NCBI GenBank assembly: GCA_002811645.1
Contig: PDIP01000145.1
Span: 66,050 to 130,049 of the forward strand
DNA: 64,000 bases
DNA from: Corallochytrium limacisporum Hawaii
Lineage: Eukaryota > Protista > Pluriformea
Direction of reading: 5' to 3'
Below the pieces are notes generated by a model. The model saw only the letters and a program-made list of their open reading frames with translations, was not told the origin of the DNA and made no database searches. The position numbers and the translations under genes are program-made. Shown here one piece after another: positions 42,242 through 61,644 of this stretch. Numbering within the stretch: the first letter of the stretch is position 1; every line of letters starts with the position of its first letter.

Positions 42242-42369
42242 NNNNNNNNNNNNNNNNNNNNNNNNNNNNNNNNNNNNNNNNNNNNNNNNNNNNNNNNNNN
42301 NNNNNNNNNNNNNNNNNNNNNNNNNNNNNNNNNNNNNNNNNNNNNNNNNNNNNNNNNNNNNNNGAGAGA

Positions 42370-43176: not shown

Positions 43177-45672
43177 CTAGACAGAGACATAGTCGCGATT
43201 GTCGCCGCGACGAGCGCGCCTGTGGAACAGAACTCCGAAGATGAGAAGGGTGGCAACTGCCACACCGCCGACAATGCTGCCAGTGAGAATCGCTACCTCT
43301 GAACCGCTTCCGCTAGAAGAAACGTCCGGAGTGCCTGAAGTTTGGGCTGAGGGGGAGCCGGTCGAGCTGCCGTGGGTGGTCACAGTCGTGTGGTGCGAAT
43401 TGGTACTACTGCCTGTTGCTGTTCCAGTACCAGTGTTCGAGCTTGGGTCGTTACTCGGGACAGAGGTGTTGGTGGAGATGCTGGTGCTGGTGGTCACGGA
43501 GGTGGCTGTAGTAGTGACTGTAGTGGGTATAGCCGGGTTGGTGCACGCTTTTTCAGCTGCACAGTTACCTACTCCACACTCTACACAGACCTGGCCGTTA
43601 CTACCACCGCATTGGCAGCCACCAGAAACGCACTGTGCGCAGCTGTAGTCGTCCTTTGATCCGGCGCACAAACCGTCGGTGTACCAAGACGTCCATTGGT
43701 TTAGATCGCACTTGGTTTCGCCACCGGAGGTGATCTTCTTGCCCCACTCGAATGTCTTGCCAGGCTCAGCCTGGATGACAACGATGCCGTCCTTGTTGGT
43801 CAGGACAGCATTAGAAGCTTCATCGGAATCAGCAGTCGGCAGAGTGACGCCCTCCATAGGCACCTGACAAGGCTCTTTGTCGCTGGAGATGCTAACGCTC
43901 ACGTAGTTGAAAGTTGTGCCATCGGAGCGCTGCGTCATGACGGTCGCGTCACAGTTGTTGAGGGCCAGGCGGTTCATGAAAATGTCATACAGTTCGTCTT
44001 GCTTGTAGGAGGTGAAAGGCAGCGAAATGTACTCGTGCATGCACTTCGAGAGGCTAAAGACGTGATTGGACAGCAGGCTCTGCGTTTCATTCTCATACTG
44101 GAAGAGATTCATGTTGGACTGATGGTACATGAGAGGATCTTGACGGAGCGACAAGATCAGAGGACCGATGTATCCGCAATCGTATTCGTTAACTTCTTCT
44201 TCGCTCTTAAAACCAAAGGCGGTTTTATCCCAAACCGCGAGGTTCTCTTCGGGAGTGGCAGCGTTCCAGTCAATGCGGGTGGCGTGGCGAGGGATCAGGG
44301 TCATGCCTTCGTAGCCGTTGTACTCTACTGTGGTGATGTAGGGCAGGAAGTTTGCGGCGGTTTCGAAGGTGTAGTTGTGCGGACCATAGTCATTGTTGGA
44401 CAGACTGTTTGTCATGCCTAGTTCATCCATGGCTTTCCAGACGGCACCGTTTTGCATACCGGAGTATGTGCCGGAGATGAAACCCTTACCGGACCAGGTT
44501 TCAGACTCAGAAAAGCCCAGGATCTGGGTGGCCATGCCAATGTTGTAGTGAAGCTCAATTTTTGCATCGGCGACACTCATCTCAGCCATGTTTGGATGAG
44601 TGAAGGTATGGCTGTGCCACAGGAAACCATCGCGCCACTCCTTAGTGAGGGCCGCCTGTGCCAGGTCAAACGAGTCGAACCACGGGCCGTAGAAGGTCTC
44701 ATTCATATACCATTTGTCTGGCCACGGGTCGGTATACTTATCTTTGTTCTCATCGGGCAAAAGGTAAGCGTCCACACTGATATTGTACATCTCAAAGAAA
44801 GGACCAAACAGATAGTTGTTTGTTTCACCGTCGTACTTGGTGGCCATGCCGTTGATGCCGAGGGCGAATTTGATAGAGTCGCCGGTCTCCTTGTTGTACT
44901 CATCCTGCAGAGTCAGATGATAGCTAACGTTGTCTACGGGCACGAGATGGTCATTACTGAGGAAAAAGTCGTCCACCTGCGGGCTCAAGGCAATTTTGCG
45001 CGCACCCATGATGACCTTATTAGTGACATATTGCAGGGCAATGTGCTGCAGGGTGATGCCGCCAAGAGTGTTGTTTTCGCAACGGGCGGTCACGTACATA
45101 ACTTTGTTCTTGGTGTCTGCGAATGCAATGGTTGCTTTAGTGTCGCTTGCGAGGGTGGCAAAGGGAACCATACCAGGCACGCCGCCGGGGATGTAGTCAA
45201 AGAATAGCCTCGGGAACTCCATGTCTTTGCCACGGACGACAACGCCTTCAAGGATCTTGGTATCCTCGGTTTTGGGTACCGTGACCGTGTTTGGCTCAGA
45301 CTTGACACCCTTCTTTTCAAGATCGTAGGGACCACCCCAGTTCATGGCTACCCACCGGGCACTATAGTTGCTCAAGTAAGTCATGATGACGCCAGCGTCA
45401 TCGTTGGAGACTGGACCGGTGGTGATGACGCAATTGTACTTGCCGTCCTCGTCAACGTCAATAAGGGCGTTGTAGCTGACCTCATCGTAGAAGTCCATTC
45501 TCATACCGGTACCCTTGAAGAGAGCGAGACCTTCTGCGTCTGTGTTGTAGAAGACAGCACAGCCGAGACCAGTCGGCCGGTAGAATTCAGTCGATGAAGC
45601 ACCCAGGGCCACTGCAGATCCAAAGATCAGCACGGCCAAGAGGGCGGAGCTCAAATACTTGTGACCTTGCAT
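43177..45672 (-). CDS. Agd3-like (CE18-type) polysaccharide deacetylase, type-I membrane-anchored, paralogue 1 (831 aa)
   Basis: Start moved to MQGHKYLSSALLAVLIFGSAVALG (signal peptide) at 45672. Agd3-type motifs: PQVDDFFL (~44960-44982), SHTFTHPNM (~44596-44610), IPRHATRI (~44280), LRQDPLMYHQSNM (~44110-44150). Followed by a 10-Cys module, Ser/Thr stalk, TM (AILTGSIVGGVAVATLLIFGVLF) and a short tail. Confidence 0.85.
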   Translation of the reverse strand: MQGHKYLSSALLAVLIFGSAVALGASSTEFYRPTGLGCAVFYNTDAEGLALFKGTGMRMDFYDEVSYNALIDVDEDGKYNCVITTGPVSNDDAGVIMTYLSNYSARWVAMNWGGPYDLEKKGVKSEPNTVTVPKTEDTKILEGVVVRGKDMEFPRLFFDYIPGGVPGMVPFATLASDTKATIAFADTKNKVMYVTARCENNTLGGITLQHIALQYVTNKVIMGARKIALSPQVDDFFLSNDHLVPVDNVSYHLTLQDEYNKETGDSIKFALGINGMATKYDGETNNYLFGPFFEMYNISVDAYLLPDENKDKYTDPWPDKWYMNETFYGPWFDSFDLAQAALTKEWRDGFLWHSHTFTHPNMAEMSVADAKIELHYNIGMATQILGFSESETWSGKGFISGTYSGMQNGAVWKAMDELGMTNSLSNNDYGPHNYTFETAANFLPYITTVEYNGYEGMTLIPRHATRIDWNAATPEENLAVWDKTAFGFKSEEEVNEYDCGYIGPLILSLRQDPLMYHQSNMNLFQYENETQSLLSNHVFSLSKCMHEYISLPFTSYKQDELYDIFMNRLALNNCDATVMTQRSDGTTFNYVSVSISSDKEPCQVPMEGVTLPTADSDEASNAVLTNKDGIVVIQAEPGKTFEWGKKITSGGETKCDLNQWTSWYTDGLCAGSKDDYSCAQCVSGGCQCGGSNGQVCVECGVGNCAAEKACTNPAIPTTVTTTATSVTTSTSISTNTSVPSNDPSSNTGTGTATGSSTNSHHTTVTTHGSSTGSPSAQTSGTPDVSSSGSGSEVAILTGSIVGGVAVATLLIFGVLFHRRARRGDNRDYVSV

Positions 45673-45791
45673 TGTTAAAGTTACAGGTTCATTATATTCT
45701 ACTACAAGCAGATTTTCAATCGATGCTTTTGGTTCTTTAACAGAGCTTGTGTGTTCGTGATCAAGAGAGTCTGACGTGTGTTCAGACGTAT

Positions 45792-45799
45792 CTTTTATA
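45792..45799 (-). promoter_or_regulatory. TATA box candidate (TATAAAAG) for deacetylase paralogue 1
   Basis: Exact TATAWAWR match 120 nt upstream of the ATG; identical in paralogue 2. Confidence 0.5.
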
Positions 45800-48700
45800 C
45801 CTGGATGCCTCTCCTTAGGTGCGATGAAGAGTCCCGTTCTGGAGTCCTTTAGACAGCTTATCATCTGATACACTACCGGCACAATTATCAAAAGAGAACT
45901 TGAAAGCTAATGAAGAATGACACGAGGAGTGAGTGGAATTTGTGCAAATTTGTCTCCCTAATGGGACAAGACGAAGAGGACCGAGCGGACACCCGGAATC
46001 CCCGCATACGAAGCGAATATGCAATTTCCATGGTACTGCGTCCGAATCATTGCTCGAGGAGGAGAAAGAATTATGAGGTCAGGCGATGGACAGCAGTCCA
46101 TGAATTTCTCTGTCCTGGTACATTTTATATCGATATATTGTGCTCACTTTGGTATCAATTGCCCCAACTGACCTCGACCGTTCGAAGTTTTCCGAAGGCC
46201 CCTTCCCTTCTCCCACCGCTCGGGCACACCTTTCCCTCTCTCCTCTTCCCCCCACCCTCCCGGGGGCGGCAGAATTTCTCTATGTTTGCCGGGTTCCGCC
46301 GTACAATAATACCCAATTCATCAGTAGGTTCAATAGGTTCACTGCCCCCTCCCACAATCTGCGAGGGACACACCGTTCTTTTGTTCGTCGTTGGACACTG
46401 TATTTATGGATTTTCCCATTTATCTGAACACACACACACACACAAAGACAGACACAGAGGAGTGTGCATGGTGTGGATCATCTCACTTTTCGTCTTCCAT
46501 ATCTTCTGTGTTTCTGCTTCCTGCATGCAGACTTTGCTCTGCAACCCGATGAAAGCGGACGCCTTTCCTCAATGTCCTCTTCACTGATCCTTTGTCCGGC
46601 AGGGTATTGCCATTTCATCACACTGTCGTACACTGGCTGTTCTTGTCCCCCCCGTTTTCCCACCCCACTCATTGGTTTCTACTCTACTTCGTTGTCGTTT
46701 GGGCTTCTTTCCGAGGAGCAACTTACGTGTGCGTCTATATCCCGTGTGCTCCATATGCATGCGTTCATGATGGGCTTCCAAGGGAGCACGCGTAGCCCCC
46801 CCCCCCAACGTGCAGTTCTTTTGGTACCGACCGATGGCTACATAAGGGTGTTCGCGGTATCCAGACGGCCAGGACTGCCCAAAAGGTGTAGATGGATATA
46901 CGCTCGTTTCGCATTATCGGCCCTTCGTCAATCTTTTTTTCTTCCTCGTGCCTTTTGCATCGGAACCTGCAAATTCCTCCATCCTCACACTCCCCCCGCC
47001 CCAGGGGGGGGTGTGGAAGGAGTAGGAAAGAGAAGCAAACGGGGACCCGGAAGACTGCTATTTGTAGCCGCGCACACCACTTTCTTTCCTTTCCCGGCGA
47101 ACAATGGTGGAACGCGGATTTCGCCAGCAAACACAGGTCAGTTTGAATACTGAATGTACCGACCTGAACTCGGAATGAAATCACTTTACCGGTAAAGTTG
47201 CTGGGGGAATGAAAAAGGAATGGAAAAAAGGGGTTGGGGGGGGGGTTAATGGACCAAAAATTTTGGGTTCCCTCGATCCGAAGAACTTGCCTGCTGGCGG
47301 GGGCCAGTGCTGCACCAGGGCGGGCCGCCAGGTATAGAGAGAGAGTGAGAGAGAGAGAGAGAGAGACAACCGGGCCGTGAACCAGATAGGGCTGTGCCCC
47401 TCCCCCCCCCCTTTCCCCACGGGCCAATCTGGTGCAGTCGAGCCATTTTCTTTCCTTTTAAGGAGCAGGTAGAGTGGAATTTGGACACTGGCGAATGGCA
47501 CTTGTTCGGCTGCGGAGGTTGGTGTTTGTGCGTGTGTGTGTGTGTTTTGCGGCCCATCAAACGTACGCCCTTTGGTTGTGTGTTTGTTTTGCGTGTGTTT
47601 GCGTAGGCAAAGGCACAGACCTGCGCAAATCGCGGGTAAAGCGTGGCAGCGGTCCTCACCCCTTTGGCGCCTCGGTAAGTGTGACGACACAGCAGAGGAC
47701 GTCGTTGCAGAACACAGCAGATGGCAAAGGCATTTACCATGGTGGTTTGCCACTGCTGACATCTTGATAGGTATTCGTCACGTTAGACTCATTAATCTAC
47801 CCATTGCGATCGTTTTCTGACTCGTCTTTGCCTTTGCACATTCATTTCTAAACCGCGTATGGCCTGTCATCGAGCACTGGGGCAGTCCCTGCTTGTGCCA
47901 CCTGGACCTCATCCTTGATGATCCATCAATTTTGAAGGAATCGAAAATTGGAAAGAAAAAAAATTGTTCGACATGACTTTTGCAGAGTGAAAGATAAACG
48001 AATGCTTCTTCAAATGTTATGAGAGTGGGAGGAATGGTCACCCGTGATTGTTACCGCCTGGGATGATGTAACAGAGGGGGAGGGAGGGACAAAGAGCGGA
48101 GTGAAAGGATTGGGTAAACACAGAATTTGGAGGTGAGCACGGCCGGCGTGGGCTGGCCGGCCATGCGTTCTCTCCGAATATAACACTGAGAAACAAGAGA
48201 AAAACTTATGGAAAACGCATACCAGAAACACCCCCGCCACACACACACATACTGGCACAGACGCGTACATGTGCGTCGTGAACACGGCACCAAACGAAGC
48301 AAGAAGCGGTATCAGTACGGGTGGATAGTCTGTAGTTTGTCAGTGGCAAGCGAGTGAGAAAGACAGCACCTCAGAGTGTAGTGAGGAGTCTGAACCATGA
48401 TATGTGTGTCCTTGTGCGCGGGGTGTGTGTGTGTGTGTTCGTGTGCCTTGAGGAAAGGGGTGTGAACGCTGTGTGAGTATGAAAGTCGTTCCGAGCAGTG
48501 TGTTGTACGGAAAATTGGTATCGTTTCCGTTCCTGGAAATGACATAACGCTTGTTTAGAACGGCGGGTCCGTTCCGCAGGCGCCTGCCACCACTCTCTCT
48601 CTGTCTCTCTTTTTCCAAAACCCCCCCCCACACACACACACACACCCTTTTTCCTCTGGTCCCATTTTCCCCGTTCTTTTCTACCGGGCTTTTTCTCCCC

Positions 48701-49142: not shown

Positions 49143-51880
49143 CTAGACAGAGGCAGAGTCAGAGACAGGATCGTCGCCACGACGAGAGCGTTTGTAGAAC
49201 AGAACCCCGAAGGTGAGAAGGGTGACAACTGCCACACCGCCAACAATGCTGCCTGTGAGAATCGCTACCTCCGATCCGCTTCCGCCACTAGACGGGTCTG
49301 TTGTGCCTGAACCCTGAGCTGAAGGGGAGGTGGTAGTCTTCGAGCTGGCGTGGGTTGTCATACTCGTGGTGGTATGCGAACCGGTGCCGGTTGAGGTGGC
49401 TGTACCGGTACTGGTGTTCGAGCTTGGGTCGGAAGTCGGGACGGAGGTGTTGGTGGAGATGGTGGTGTTGGTGGTCATGGAACTGGCTGTGGTAGTGACT
49501 GTAGTGGGTATTGCCGGGTTTGTGCACACGGGTTCAGCTTCACAGTTGCCTACTCCACACTCTACACAGACCTGGCCGCTAGTACCACTGCATTGGCAAC
49601 CACCAGTAACGCACTGTGCGCAGCTGTAGTCGTCCTTTGAATTAAAGCACAAACCGCCGGTGTACCAAGACGTCCATTGGTTTAGCTTGCACTTGGTTTC
49701 GCTACCGGAAGTTGTCTTCTTGCCCCACTCGAATGTCTTGCCAGGCTCAGCCTGGATGACAACGATGCCGTCCTTGTTGGTCAGGACAGCATTAGAAGCT
49801 TCATCGGAATCAGCAGTCGGCAGAGTNNNNNNNNNNNNNNNNNNNNNNNNNNNNNNNNNNNNNNNNNNNNNNNNNNNNNNNNNNNNNNNNNNNNNNNNNN
49901 NNNNNNNNNNNNNNNNNNNNNNNNNNNNNNNNNNNNNNNNNNNNNNNNNNNNNNNNNNNNNNNNNNNNNNNNNNNNNNNNNNNNNNNNNNNNNNNNNNNN
50001 NNNNNNNNNNNNNNNNNNNNNNNNNNNNNNNNNNNNNNNNNNNNNNNNNNNNNNNNNNNNNNNNNNNNNNNNNNNNNNNNNNNNNNNNNNNNNNNNNNNN
50101 NNNNNNNNNNNNNNNNNNNNNNNNNNNNNNNNNNNNNNNNNNNNNNNNNNNNNNNNNNNNNNNNNNNNNNNNNNNNNNNNNNNNNNNNNNNNNNNNNNNN
50201 NNNNNNNNNNNNNNNNNNNNNNNNNNNNNNNNNNNNNNNNNNNNNNNNNNNNNNNNNNNNNNNNNNNNNNNNNNNNNNNNNNNNNNNNNNNNNNNNNNNN
50301 NNNNNNNNNNNNNNNNNNNNNNNNNNNNNNNNNNNNNNNNNNNNNNNNNNNNNNNNNNNNNNNNNNNNNNNNNNNNNNNNNNNNNNNNNNNNNNNNNNNN
50401 NNNNNNNNNNNNNNNNNNNNNNNNNNNNNNNNNNNNNNNNNNNNNNNNNNNNNNNNNNNNNNNNNNNNNNNNNNNNNNNNNNNNNNNNNNNNNNNNNNNN
50501 NNNNNNNNNNNNNNNNNNNTAGCCGTTGTACTCTACTGTGGTGATGTAGGGCAGGAAGTTTGCGGCGGTTTCGAAGGTGTAGTTGTGCGGACCATAGTCA
50601 TTGTTGGACAGGCTGTTTGTCATGCCTAGTTCATCCATGGCTTTCCAGACGGCACCGTTTTGCATACCGGAGTATGTACCGGAGATGAAACCCTTACTGG
50701 ACCAGGTTTCAGACTCAGAAAAGCCCAGGAGATGCGTGGCCATGTCAATGCTGTAGCCAAGCTCAATTTTTGCATCGGCGACACTCAACTCAGCCATGTT
50801 TGGATGAGTGAAGGTATGGCTGTGCCACAGGAAACCATCGCGCCATTCCTCAGTGAGGGCCCCCTGTGCCAGGTCAAACGAGTCGAACCACGAGCCGTAG
50901 AAGGTCTCATTCATATACCATTTGTCTGGCCATGGGTTGGTATACTTATTCTTGTTATCACTGGGCATAGAGTAAGCGTCCACATCCATAGCGTACATGT
51001 CAAAGTAAGGACCAAACTCATAGTTGTTGGTCAGACCGTTGTACTTGGTGGCGATGCCGTTGATGCCGAGGGCGAATTTGATAGAGTCGCCGGTCTTATT
51101 GTTGTACTCGTCCTGCAGAGTCAGATGATAGCTAACGTTGTCTCTGGGCACGAGGTGATCAGAACTGAGGAAAAAGTCGTCCACCTGCGGGCTGATGGCA
51201 ACCTTGCGCGCACCCATGAAGACATTTTCCGTGACATATTGCAGGGCAATGTGCTGCAGGGTGATGCCACCAAGGGAGGTGTTTTCGCAAAGGGCGGTCA
51301 CGTACATAATATTGTTCGTGGTGTCTGCGAATGCAATGGTTGCGTTAGCGTCGCTTGCGAGGGTGGCAAAGGGAACCATATTAGGCACGCCATTGGGGAT
51401 GTAGTCAAAGAATAGCTCCGTGAAGTTCAGTGAGGTGCCACGGACGACAACGCCTTCAAGGATTTCGGTATCGTTGGTCTTTGGTACAGTAACCAGGTTT
51501 GGTTCAGACGTGACACCCTTCTTTTCAGAATCGTAGGGACCACCCCAGTTCATGGCTACCCATCGGGCACTATAGTTGTTCAGGTAAGTCATGATGATGC
51601 CAACATCATCATCAGAAACTGCGCCGTTGGTGATGACGCAATTGTACTTGCCGTCCTCTTGAACGTCAATAAGGGCGTCGTAGCTGACCTCGTCATAGAA
51701 GTCCATTCTCATACCGGTACCCTTGAAGAGAGCGAGACCTTCTACGTCTATGTTGTTGAAGACAGCACAACCAAGACCAGTCGGAAAGTAGAATTTAGTC
51801 GATGAATCAGCCAGGGCCACTGCAGATCCAAAGATCAGCACGGCCAAGAGGGCGGAGCTCAAATACTTGTGACCTTGCAT
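49143..51880 (-). CDS. Agd3-like (CE18-type) deacetylase, membrane-anchored, paralogue 2 (interrupted by assembly gap 49827-50519)
   Basis: Same signal peptide (ATG 51880), PQVDDFFL and SHTFTHPNM. After the gap come the same 10-Cys module, S/T stalk, TM and stop at 49143. The ORF track splits it (49781-51973 and 49143-49652) because of the gap length. Confidence 0.8.
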
Positions 51881-59202: not shown

Positions 59203-61644
59203 CTATAAGCCGTCCGGAATACAAGCTTCGATCACGCCGCAAGAGTCGCCATCTCCGCATTGGACACAGGTGTTCGGATTATCCTGGTCGCACTGGCAGC
59301 CACCGTCAGCGCACTCAGCACAGTCAGTCGAGTCTGCGTCAAACCAACAAGTTTGGCCGGTATGCCTGACAGTCCACTCGTTAAGAGTGCAACCGCCATT
59401 GTCGCCACCGTTGTCACCCCCGTTGTCACCGCCGTTGTCGCCGCCGTTGTCGCCGCCGTTGTCGCCACCGTTATCGCCACCGTTATCGCCACCGTCGGGC
59501 TCACATGCTTCAGCGGCCGCGCATGCTTCCTCAAAACCATCGCCGCACGGGACGCAAACTCTGTGATTGTTTACGTTACAGCCGCAACCACCGTTTTTAC
59601 ACAAGGCACAGTCATCTCGGTTAGCGTCAAACCAACAAGTGTCGCCTCCGGGGCTGAGTGTCCATTCGTTGAGAGTGCAGTCACCGCCATTGTCACCGCC
59701 ATTGTCACCGCCATTGTCACCACCATCCCCAGAGTCATCGATTGAACCGTATTCGTATGTCACACCTGCGCTGGCGGCGATCAACGCTCGCTGTCCATCA
59801 TTAGAGAGGACAGCGCCCGCTGATGTGCCGTCTACCGCAGCTGGGAGAGTGATACCTTCTAGGGGAACATTACAGGAGGCATTGGTGCGGATGCTGACGT
59901 AGGTTACGATGCCTTCACCGCTGCGCTGCAGTACAACCTCGGGGTTGCAGTTGTTAAGAGCAGCGCGTGCCCGGAAAATATGGGCAATATCGTCTTGCTT
60001 GAAGGAGCGGATGGGCAGTGTCAGATACTCATGGATAGTCTCGGCCAATGTGCTGACATGGAGAGACACCAGGCTGTTAGTGGAACCAGAGATGGGATTG
60101 GTGTTCATGTTAGCCTGATGGTACATTAGGGGATCCTGGCGCAGGGCCATGATTGGCGGACCCAATTCCACCGTAGCTTCATAATCCATCTGTTCTTCGA
60201 TGCTGTTGAAGGTGAATCCCCAACCGTTCACGATGTTCAGATTCTGTTCCGGTGTTGCCGCGTTCCAAATGATGAATGTGGGATGCCGTGGGATGAGCGT
60301 GACGCCAGCGTATCCATTGGTCTGAACAGTGGAAGTCCAAGGAAGATAGTTACGGCGGGTAGATTCTGTGTAGCTGTGTTCCGGGTTACCATTGTCGGTG
60401 AGTCCATTGTTTATGCCAAGTCGAGCCATTGCCATCAAGACGTCGCCGTTTTGCATGCCGGAGTATTGGCCGCACAGTAGGGAATTGGGTGACCATGTAC
60501 TGTAGCCACGCAGACCGAGAACGTCCTCTGCAATGTGTTTGTTGTACAATATTTCAAGTTCCGTATCTCCATCGCTGAGCACCGCCATATTGGCATGGGT
60601 CATGGTGTGGCTATACCAGTTGAAGCCCTCTTTCCAGCTGCTCGATTGGGCCGCTTGGGCGAGAGGAAAGGCGTCCACCCAACCCTGCCAGAAGCTCTGA
60701 TCATTCCACCAATTGTCGGGCCAAGGATTCACGTACTTGTCGGAATTAGTACCAGCCAGTGAAAACGCATCCACGTCCTTTGCACTGGAATCGTAAGCAC
60801 CCCATTCAAAGCTGCTGGTCACTCCGCCGAGCGCGATGCCCATGCCATTGAATACCAGGTCGAGCCTGATGGCGTCACCGTACGCAGAATTGTGGGAGTC
60901 CTGCCAATTCAAATGCCAGCTGACCTCATCCACAGAAACCTGCTCTGTGTCATTAAGGAAGAAGTCGTCAATCTGGGGTGAAACATTAAGCTGGCGAGTA
61001 CCAACGAAGGATCCTCGCGTAACCCATTGAAGTGCCAAGTGCTGCAAAGCCAGCCCTTCCATGTAGCTTGAGTTAAGATCACTTAGGACGTACAGGACGA
61101 GACCAGCGTTATCCTCAAACACCACAGCTCTGGATGTATTGGACCCGGTGGATACGAGGGTACGGTATCCCGACTGACTGTTGATGTAGTCAAAGTTTAG
61201 CGACGGAGCAGGCCAGGCCTGCCCGCGATTAATAACGCCGCTAGCAAAGGCAGTGTTAGTGGCATTGGGACGCAGGGTATTCTCCGACGTAGCGATGCGG
61301 CTGTTATTGATGGGTCCACCCCAATTCAAGGCTATCCAGCGGGCGCCGTACTGAGAGCTGTAGCTGGTGATGGTGTTCGCGACAGGAGAACTTACCGAGC
61401 CGAGAGTGATAATGCAGTCGTAGTTGCCGACACCATTGCTGGACAGTGAACCACTGTTGACTACACTGAGGTAGGTCATGGGCATACCAGTCCCTTTGAA
61501 GACCTGAAGACCATCTCCATTGAAATTGTTAATCACTGCGCATCCTGCCTTGGTGGGTGAGTATGCTGTGGTCACAGCAGCGCAAAACAAGATCAACAGG
61601 GCCAGCCAGCAGACCGGGTGATCGCGATACTGAGCGCTTGACAT
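59203..61644 (-). CDS. Agd3-like (CE18-type) deacetylase, secreted, paralogue 3 (813 aa), with two 10-Cys modules and (GGDN)n linkers
   Basis: Signal peptide (..CWLALLILFCAAVTTA). N-terminal region FKGTGMP..GNYDCII..YSSQYGARWI resembles the Agd3 N-terminal carbohydrate-binding domain. Motifs PQIDDFFL, SHTMTHANM, IPRHPTFI, LRQDPLMYHQANM. No TM segment. Confidence 0.88.
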   Translation of the reverse strand: MSSAQYRDHPVCWLALLILFCAAVTTAYSPTKAGCAVINNFNGDGLQVFKGTGMPMTYLSVVNSGSLSSNGVGNYDCIITLGSVSSPVANTITSYSSQYGARWIALNWGGPINNSRIATSENTLRPNATNTAFASGVINRGQAWPAPSLNFDYINSQSGYRTLVSTGSNTSRAVVFEDNAGLVLYVLSDLNSSYMEGLALQHLALQWVTRGSFVGTRQLNVSPQIDDFFLNDTEQVSVDEVSWHLNWQDSHNSAYGDAIRLDLVFNGMGIALGGVTSSFEWGAYDSSAKDVDAFSLAGTNSDKYVNPWPDNWWNDQSFWQGWVDAFPLAQAAQSSSWKEGFNWYSHTMTHANMAVLSDGDTELEILYNKHIAEDVLGLRGYSTWSPNSLLCGQYSGMQNGDVLMAMARLGINNGLTDNGNPEHSYTESTRRNYLPWTSTVQTNGYAGVTLIPRHPTFIIWNAATPEQNLNIVNGWGFTFNSIEEQMDYEATVELGPPIMALRQDPLMYHQANMNTNPISGSTNSLVSLHVSTLAETIHEYLTLPIRSFKQDDIAHIFRARAALNNCNPEVVLQRSGEGIVTYVSIRTNASCNVPLEGITLPAAVDGTSAGAVLSNDGQRALIAASAGVTYEYGSIDDSGDGGDNGGDNGGDNGGDCTLNEWTLSPGGDTCWFDANRDDCALCKNGGCGCNVNNHRVCVPCGDGFEEACAAAEACEPDGGDNGGDNGGDNGGDNGGDNGGDNGGDNGGDNGGCTLNEWTVRHTGQTCWFDADSTDCAECADGGCQCDQDNPNTCVQCGDGDSCGVIEACIPDGL
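59392..59495 (-). repeat. Coding 12-bp tandem repeat encoding (GGDN)x8; a shorter copy lies at about 59680-59725
   Basis: Directly visible in DNA and protein. Confidence 0.95.

Follow-up and report, generated by a model that had tools for sequence, protein, structure and literature searches.

A disulfide-rich module on Corallochytrium limacisporum deacetylases belongs to a large domain family predating animals and is a candidate binding module

Corallochytrium limacisporum is a free-living unicellular relative of animals. A 64,000-nt stretch of its genome (contig PDIP01000145.1, positions 66,050 to 130,049; hereafter the window) contains three intronless genes for Agd3-like deacetylases of family CE18 (paralogues 1 to 3), and the C-terminal ends of their products carry four copies of one module of about 57 residues with ten cysteines. 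These copies belong to a large family that predates animals and is not private to the three genes. The genome holds at least 47 copies and others occur in invertebrate matrix proteins, so that an earlier note on this DNA, which had the module limited to the three deacetylases, drew its range too narrowly. With a probability that we put at roughly 45%, the module would act as carbohydrate-binding modules (CBMs) do and bind a wall or matrix polymer, thereby keeping enzymes in place on it.

Copies and hosts in the Corallochytrium genome

All four window copies lie on the minus strand and appear only in its translation, a strand assignment that has to be added to the otherwise accurate coordinates of the earlier note. 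When recounted on the four translations, the cysteine spacing was as previously described, C-x13-C-x8-C-x2-C-x4-C-x-C-x7-C-x2-C-x(4-7)-C-x5-C, and the alignment contains 21 columns that are invariant in all four copies. The hosts are members of the Agd3-type CE18 family and are predicted deacetylases: the profile Agd3_CE (PF25115) matches them at E-values of about 1e-40, with scores of 142.8 and 136.6 bits against a curated cut-off of 27.6.

A profile of the four copies, searched against the whole assembly (24.1 Mb in 286 contigs), gave 52 matches with E-values down to 1e-30. The 47 clear copies fall in about 21 genes, whose loci were fetched from the genome. Each gene has one to four copies, at either end of the protein, and this range applies to secreted and to anchored hosts alike. 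Every host begins with a signal peptide or an N-terminal signal anchor. Nine of the genes encode Agd3-type CE18 deacetylases, four encode proteins of the GH114 endo-alpha-1,4-polygalactosaminidase family, and two encode purple acid phosphatases; the remainder, all without a Pfam match, comprise the host families U1 (three genes) and U2 (two genes) and two singletons. The module is thus found on 9 of the 18 CE18 loci and 4 of the 6 GH114 loci of the genome. The genome search detected no GH135/Spherulin4 gene in Corallochytrium.

When the copies were compared with one another, they were most alike between paralogues of a single host family. From this it follows that the fusions are old and that gene duplication multiplied them; recent domain shuffling was rejected on the same grounds.

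Distribution and partners outside Corallochytrium

A profile built from 47 copies was searched with HMMER against 1.84 billion representative proteins. It matched 238 proteins (cluster representatives) at E<=1e-3, 51 of them at E<=1e-10, and E-values outside Corallochytrium reach 1e-52. Deuterostome carriers include Branchiostoma (amphioxus), Styela (a tunicate) and Glandiceps (an acorn worm). The other named carriers are the brachiopod Lingula, the molluscs Haliotis, Ruditapes, Argopecten and Sinanodonta, and Tubulanus and Dimorphilus (the nemertean and annelid in the set), while many more come from marine metatranscriptomes. A word-indexed protein search with the module region of paralogue 3 was dominated by the Gly-Gly-Asp-Asn linkers and returned a single true match, and so says little about distribution.

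The partner domains outside Corallochytrium are of two kinds. Mosaic and matrix partners comprise VWD accompanied by D8C, Ig_VWDE and EGF (the "VWDE-like" proteins end in a tandem pair of modules), a Frizzled-Ig-trypsin protein, EGF arrays and discoidin/F5-8C domains. Sugar-related partners comprise C-type lectin and galactose-binding domains, GT31 and GT32-like transferases, and DUF4874 with DUF4832. In addition, two unrelated environmental eukaryotes have the module fused to GH135/Spherulin4, with one clear copy of the type B described below in one case and two divergent copies in the other. In the fungal galactosaminogalactan pathway, GH135/Spherulin4 makes up a third family of hydrolases. 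CE18, GH114 and GH135 have one substrate class in common in fungi (PMC7229062; PMC11356417).

Cysteine pattern and conserved residues

The family alignment comprises 244 instances placed on the profile, 62 from Corallochytrium and 182 from elsewhere. In eight columns, the cysteine is present in 89-100% of the instances. Columns 15 and 28 are either both cysteine or neither (146/0/0/98 for both, one, the other and neither), and paired behaviour is also evident for columns 34 and 47 (217/0/3/24) and for columns 3 and 59, the first and last cysteines of the ten-cysteine pattern (42/28/7/167). Such columns are read as disulfide partners, because presence or absence in pairs is what disulfide partners show. 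From this covariation we infer a core of eight cysteines and a fifth disulfide that varies by lineage. The five disulfides proposed earlier agree with this near-perfect covariation of cysteine pairs, and for the window copies it predicts the bonds C1-C10 and C5-C8.

The form with all ten cysteines of the window copies, which may be closed by a clasp between the N- and C-terminal ends (type A), accounts for 42 of the 62 Corallochytrium instances and none of the 182 others. Outside Corallochytrium the form is type B, with cysteines at columns 15 and 28 (143 instances), which also occurs in one Corallochytrium GH114 protein; in animals the fifth pair adjoins the second and fourth core cysteines. 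Forms with only core cysteines, eight or six in number, are found as well. The ten-cysteine pattern therefore describes the window copies correctly, but as a definition of the family it gives way to the eight-cysteine core, of which it is a lineage-specific variant.

Conservation in Corallochytrium and animals extends beyond the cysteines to an aromatic residue (97%) followed by a threonine (96%), and to a glycine and an alanine (94%). An aromatic pair and an aspartate after the second cysteine, an Asp-Cys-Ala motif and a Gly-Gly-Cys-Gln-Cys motif are conserved too. The aromatics to which the earlier note drew attention are general only in part: the family keeps one before the invariant threonine and a pair after the second cysteine, and paralogues 1 and 2 do not have the pair.

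Predicted structure and relationship to known families

AlphaFold models were confident for copy 2 of paralogue 3 (47 sequences; predicted local distance difference test score, pLDDT, 90.7) and for a scallop copy (114 sequences; pLDDT 82.4). In both, four short strands and a terminal helix follow one arrangement, which suggests that the module folds independently. On the evidence of these stand-alone models and of the fusions to CE18, GH114, GH135, GT31 and GT32-like domains, the module forms a discrete fold contiguous with carbohydrate-active enzymes, which is the structural part of the CAZy definition of a CBM. With hosts that are secreted or anchored at the surface, and with paired cysteines, it is read as a disulfide-bonded extracellular module; a metal-binding cysteine cluster was ruled out for these same reasons.

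No Corallochytrium or animal copy has a Pfam match at E<=1, and two profiles found nothing among PDB sequences at E<=10. Foldseek returned no match better than E 4 for either model. Its top rows are chains of the TNF receptor 4-1BB, with E-values of 4.7-8.9 and template modelling (TM) scores of 0.27-0.32, which stayed below Z=2 on a second look; indeed, neither model reaches Z>=2 against 48,161 chains. In the ESM Atlas, a shape search gave rows that were all below TM 0.5, with EGF clusters at 0.36-0.38, and a feature search gave no usable match. Literature searches on short motifs and on Corallochytrium wall enzymes found nothing relevant. The description of the module as unassigned thus holds across Pfam, PDB sequence searches and fold searches with two confident models. 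Given the small size of the domain, the lack of a fold match is no proof of a new fold, and no existing family can be assigned.

The families that the earlier note had set aside were rightly excluded, as none gives a Pfam match at E<=1 and the spacing differs. This applies to CBM14/peritrophin-A (PF01607), CBM1 (PF00734), WSC (PF01822) and hevein/CBM18 (PF00187), whose CC doublet is missing from the type A spacing. Like the module, hevein and peritrophin-A are small, disulfide-held extracellular domains with conserved aromatics, occur in one or several copies on linkers of carbohydrate-active enzymes, and are also present in non-enzymatic matrix or mucin-like proteins. The module differs from both in having no sequence or fold match to them and in its core of eight cysteines with a variable pair.

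The six cysteines of EGF-like domains are paired 1-3, 2-4 and 5-6, and the eight of PSI are paired 1-4, 2-8, 3-6 and 5-7. The module resembles EGF and laminin-EGF domains in size, in its CxC motif and in its place within animal mosaic matrix proteins, and EGF domains are its weak nearest fold neighbours. Unlike them, it is matched by no EGF profile, its best fold rows stay below TM 0.4, and the first cysteine of its CxC motif (column 34) covaries with a downstream partner (column 47). With PSI it shares an extracellular setting, a length of about 50 residues, eight cysteines and the local spacing C-x(6-8)-C-x2-C-x(4-8)-C-x(1-2)-C-x(6-8)-C. A PSI assignment was nevertheless rejected: PF01437 has neither a sequence nor a fold match, the module is predicted to consist mostly of short strands, and the covarying pairs do not fit PSI connectivity when the cysteines are mapped onto it by eye.

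A CE18 enzyme with a non-catalytic module has a precedent in Agd3 of Aspergillus fumigatus, whose CBM87 binds the galactosaminogalactan substrate and is an alpha/beta/alpha domain of about 220 residues, N-terminal to the catalytic domain (PMC7229062). The module described here is, by contrast, a disulfide knot of 57 residues that sits C-terminally on linkers, and it is absent from the fungal and bacterial Agd3 proteins described in that study (PMC7229062).

Proposed role and alternative explanations

The module represents an ancient and unannotated family of extracellular domains, about 57 residues long and probably self-folding, with eight core cysteines and a fifth disulfide that may act as an N-to-C clasp in Corallochytrium and be formed by a different pair in animals. 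In Corallochytrium its fusion to secreted or membrane-anchored enzymes is old, and the module has since increased in number as these enzymes did. Most of them belong to families whose members deacetylate (CE18) galactosamine-type exopolysaccharides or cut them (GH114 and GH114-like), and the module, itself non-catalytic and set on flexible linkers, would most likely keep them at a cell-wall or matrix polymer. The probable reading is a new domain that binds surfaces or sugars. Three enzyme families with galactosamine polymers as substrates carry it, and this recurrence makes carbohydrate or wall binding plausible, and the designation as a new carbohydrate-binding module, taken from the earlier note, is likewise plausible.

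Several lines of evidence favour a binding module. Repeated fusion to the unrelated CE18, GH114 and GH135 families, with their one fungal substrate class, strengthens this reading, as do the fusions to lectin domains and glycosyltransferases. The copies are strung like beads on flexible low-complexity linkers, one to four per protein and at one end of the enzyme or the other, an arrangement that is typical of the binding modules of carbohydrate-active enzymes and supports this reading further. Other observations weigh against it. Carriers of the module also include purple acid phosphatases, VWD/EGF matrix proteins and a Frizzled-Ig-trypsin protein; within this genome it is missing from half of the CE18 genes and from a third of the GH114 genes; the conserved aromatic pair is missing from paralogues 1 and 2 of the window; and fungal Agd3 already has its own binding module, CBM87 (PMC7229062).

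The fusions to phosphatases, VWD and EGF domains and a protease are fitted equally well by a general protein-binding or spacer module. Such an EGF-like element would set the distance between enzyme and surface, or mediate oligomerisation or matrix contacts, and would bind no sugar. The animal copies indeed stand within classical mosaic matrix proteins, the tethered paralogues of the window carry the module between catalytic domain and stalk, phosphatases are among the hosts, and what weak resemblance the fold searches found was to EGF and TNF-receptor repeats. This reading is nonetheless the less likely of the two, as the Corallochytrium copies are set apart by long flexible linkers and form no rigid rod, several polar and aromatic residues are conserved besides the cysteines, and the module is fused repeatedly to three different enzyme families with one substrate class. 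The module might also belong to a known superfamily of small disulfide-rich domains (EGF/laminin-EGF, TNF-receptor repeat or PSI), so divergent that searches would fail to recognise it at this size. Domains of about 57 residues inherently score low in fold searches, weak rows came up for 4-1BB and EGF domains only (with EGF clusters in the ESM Atlas), and the spacing is locally like that of PSI and EGF. We consider this improbable in view of the negative Pfam (E<=1-5), PDB and fold searches given above, which cover two profiles and both models, and of the downstream partner of the first CxC cysteine, whose equivalent in EGF and PSI pairs upstream. An origin of the pattern by chance, from low complexity or from a repeat that is not coding is scarcely conceivable: only the repetitive linkers nearby would suggest it, while the open reading frames (ORFs) are long, the profile E-values go down to 1e-30 within Corallochytrium and to 1e-52 beyond it, conservation of the module spans phyla, and eight host ORFs are 100% identical to published EukProt Clim_evm proteins.

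Beyond the binding role itself, the family may have a particular ligand and history. It would found a new carbohydrate-binding family for polymers rich in galactosamine or N-acetylgalactosamine, or for related amino-sugar polymers, having arisen before animals, tethered wall- or matrix-remodelling enzymes in a unicellular holozoan, and survived in extracellular-matrix and mucus-type proteins of invertebrates. We hold this more specific proposal to be less likely than not.

Host genes and other loci

The features of the window and the other loci are collected in Table 1. Paralogue 3 is predicted to be secreted from its signal peptide and the absence of a membrane segment, and its two copies share 57% identity. 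In paralogues 1 and 2 a single copy precedes a Ser/Thr-rich stalk, which leads to one membrane segment and a short basic tail. The earlier note linked the two copies on the secreted enzyme, against one on each of the tethered enzymes, to avidity, which would be a putative effect; across the genome, secreted and anchored hosts alike have one to four copies.

In paralogue 1, the open frame continues for 73 codons (45673-45891, minus strand) upstream of the methionine that precedes the signal peptide, and this methionine (45670-45672) is probably the true start. An assembly gap at 49827-50519 has removed part of paralogue 2 between the deacetylase domain and the module. Another gap, at 42242-42363, lies within a dinucleotide microsatellite, and there are five other runs of N in the window.

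Table 1. Positions of the modules, their window host genes and further loci carrying the module.
Feature	Position	Strand	Remarks
Paralogue 1 ORF, from probable start	43177..45672	-	Met before signal peptide
Paralogue 1 membrane segment	43225..43290	-	followed by short basic tail
Paralogue 1 Ser/Thr-rich stalk	43291..43542	-	module to membrane segment
Paralogue 1 module	43543..43710	-	10 Cys, type A; translation; profile E 5e-30
Paralogue 1 CE18 domain	43939-44691	-	
Paralogue 2 membrane segment	49197..49262	-	
Paralogue 2 module	49524..49691	-	10 Cys, type A; 83% identity to paralogue 1 module
Paralogue 3, whole ORF	59203..61644	-	813 aa; signal peptide, no membrane segment
Paralogue 3 module copy 2 (C-terminal)	59221..59391	-	10 Cys, type A; translation; profile E 1.5e-31
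Paralogue 3 linker between copies	59392..59502	-	flexible Gly-Gly-Asp-Asn repeats
Paralogue 3 module copy 1	59503..59679	-	10 Cys, type A; translation; profile E 7e-30
Paralogue 3 linker, enzyme body to copy 1	59680..59769	-	partly Gly-Gly-Asp-Asn repeats
Paralogue 3 Agd3-type CE18 domain	59935..60942	-	PF25115 E 1.8e-41, residues 235-570
U1 protein	L033:2909-5542	+	one of three paralogous secreted proteins
U1 protein	L043:2141-4711	-	paralogue of the above
U1 protein	L048:199-2277	-	paralogue of the above
U2 protein	L041:2549-4759	+	4 C-terminal modules
U2 protein	L042:2669-4171	+	1 C-terminal module; paralogue of the above
GH114 protein	L044:3666-5270	+	two modules
GH114 protein	L045:3444-4925	+	two modules
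GH135/Spherulin4-module protein	L053:66-1346	+	environmental eukaryotic transcript or contig
GH135/Spherulin4-module protein	L054:405-3185	+	environmental eukaryotic transcript or contig

The U1 proteins consist of one to three N-terminal modules and a region of about 550 residues without a Pfam match. Language-model neighbours of this region include a GH114 cluster at 0.87, and its appearance is GH114/GHL10-like; a profile-profile alignment over the catalytic "DG..D" motif was weak (E 2.4e-4, 44% probability). U1 is probably a GH114-like barrel, an assignment offered as a lead. The U2 proteins have no deacetylase domain, and the weak likeness of their N-terminal 100 or so residues to the N-terminal (CBM87-side) domain of the local Agd3 paralogues is likewise to be taken as a lead. 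Searches of PDB sequences with phmmer, using the partner domains still without a name, gave nothing.

The two GH114 proteins in Table 1 have, in order, a cytosolic N-terminus, a signal anchor, two modules and the catalytic domain, which gives them the look of type II membrane proteins, with a layout that mirrors the one seen in the window's tethered deacetylases. With at least 18 Agd3-type CE18 loci and 6 GH114 loci, the genome has a large set of galactosaminogalactan-type enzymes for a holozoan. A further family (P0148, P0147, P0099, P0127 and 57 related clusters) was found only in marine metatranscriptomes. Proteins of the P0148 type comprise a signal peptide, a Lys/Pro-rich stretch, two modules reduced to six and eight cysteines, an EGF-like domain and a C-terminal region without an assignment.

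Implications

Should the module bind a glycan, CAZy would gain a new binding family, and the module could serve as a probe for amino-sugar exopolysaccharides like those of fungal (galactosaminogalactan) and bacterial (Pel) biofilms. Whatever its ligand, the domain is extracellular and conserved, occurs in a unicellular animal relative as well as in several invertebrate phyla, and has been missed by current domain libraries. With a name for it, hundreds of proteins could be annotated better, and it would join the known matrix building blocks that are older than animals. The finding also draws attention to the 18 CE18 and 6 GH114 loci of Corallochytrium as enzymes of the galactosaminogalactan type, and, should amino-sugar binding prove true, it would link the handling of cell-surface glycans before animals to the biology of the animal matrix.

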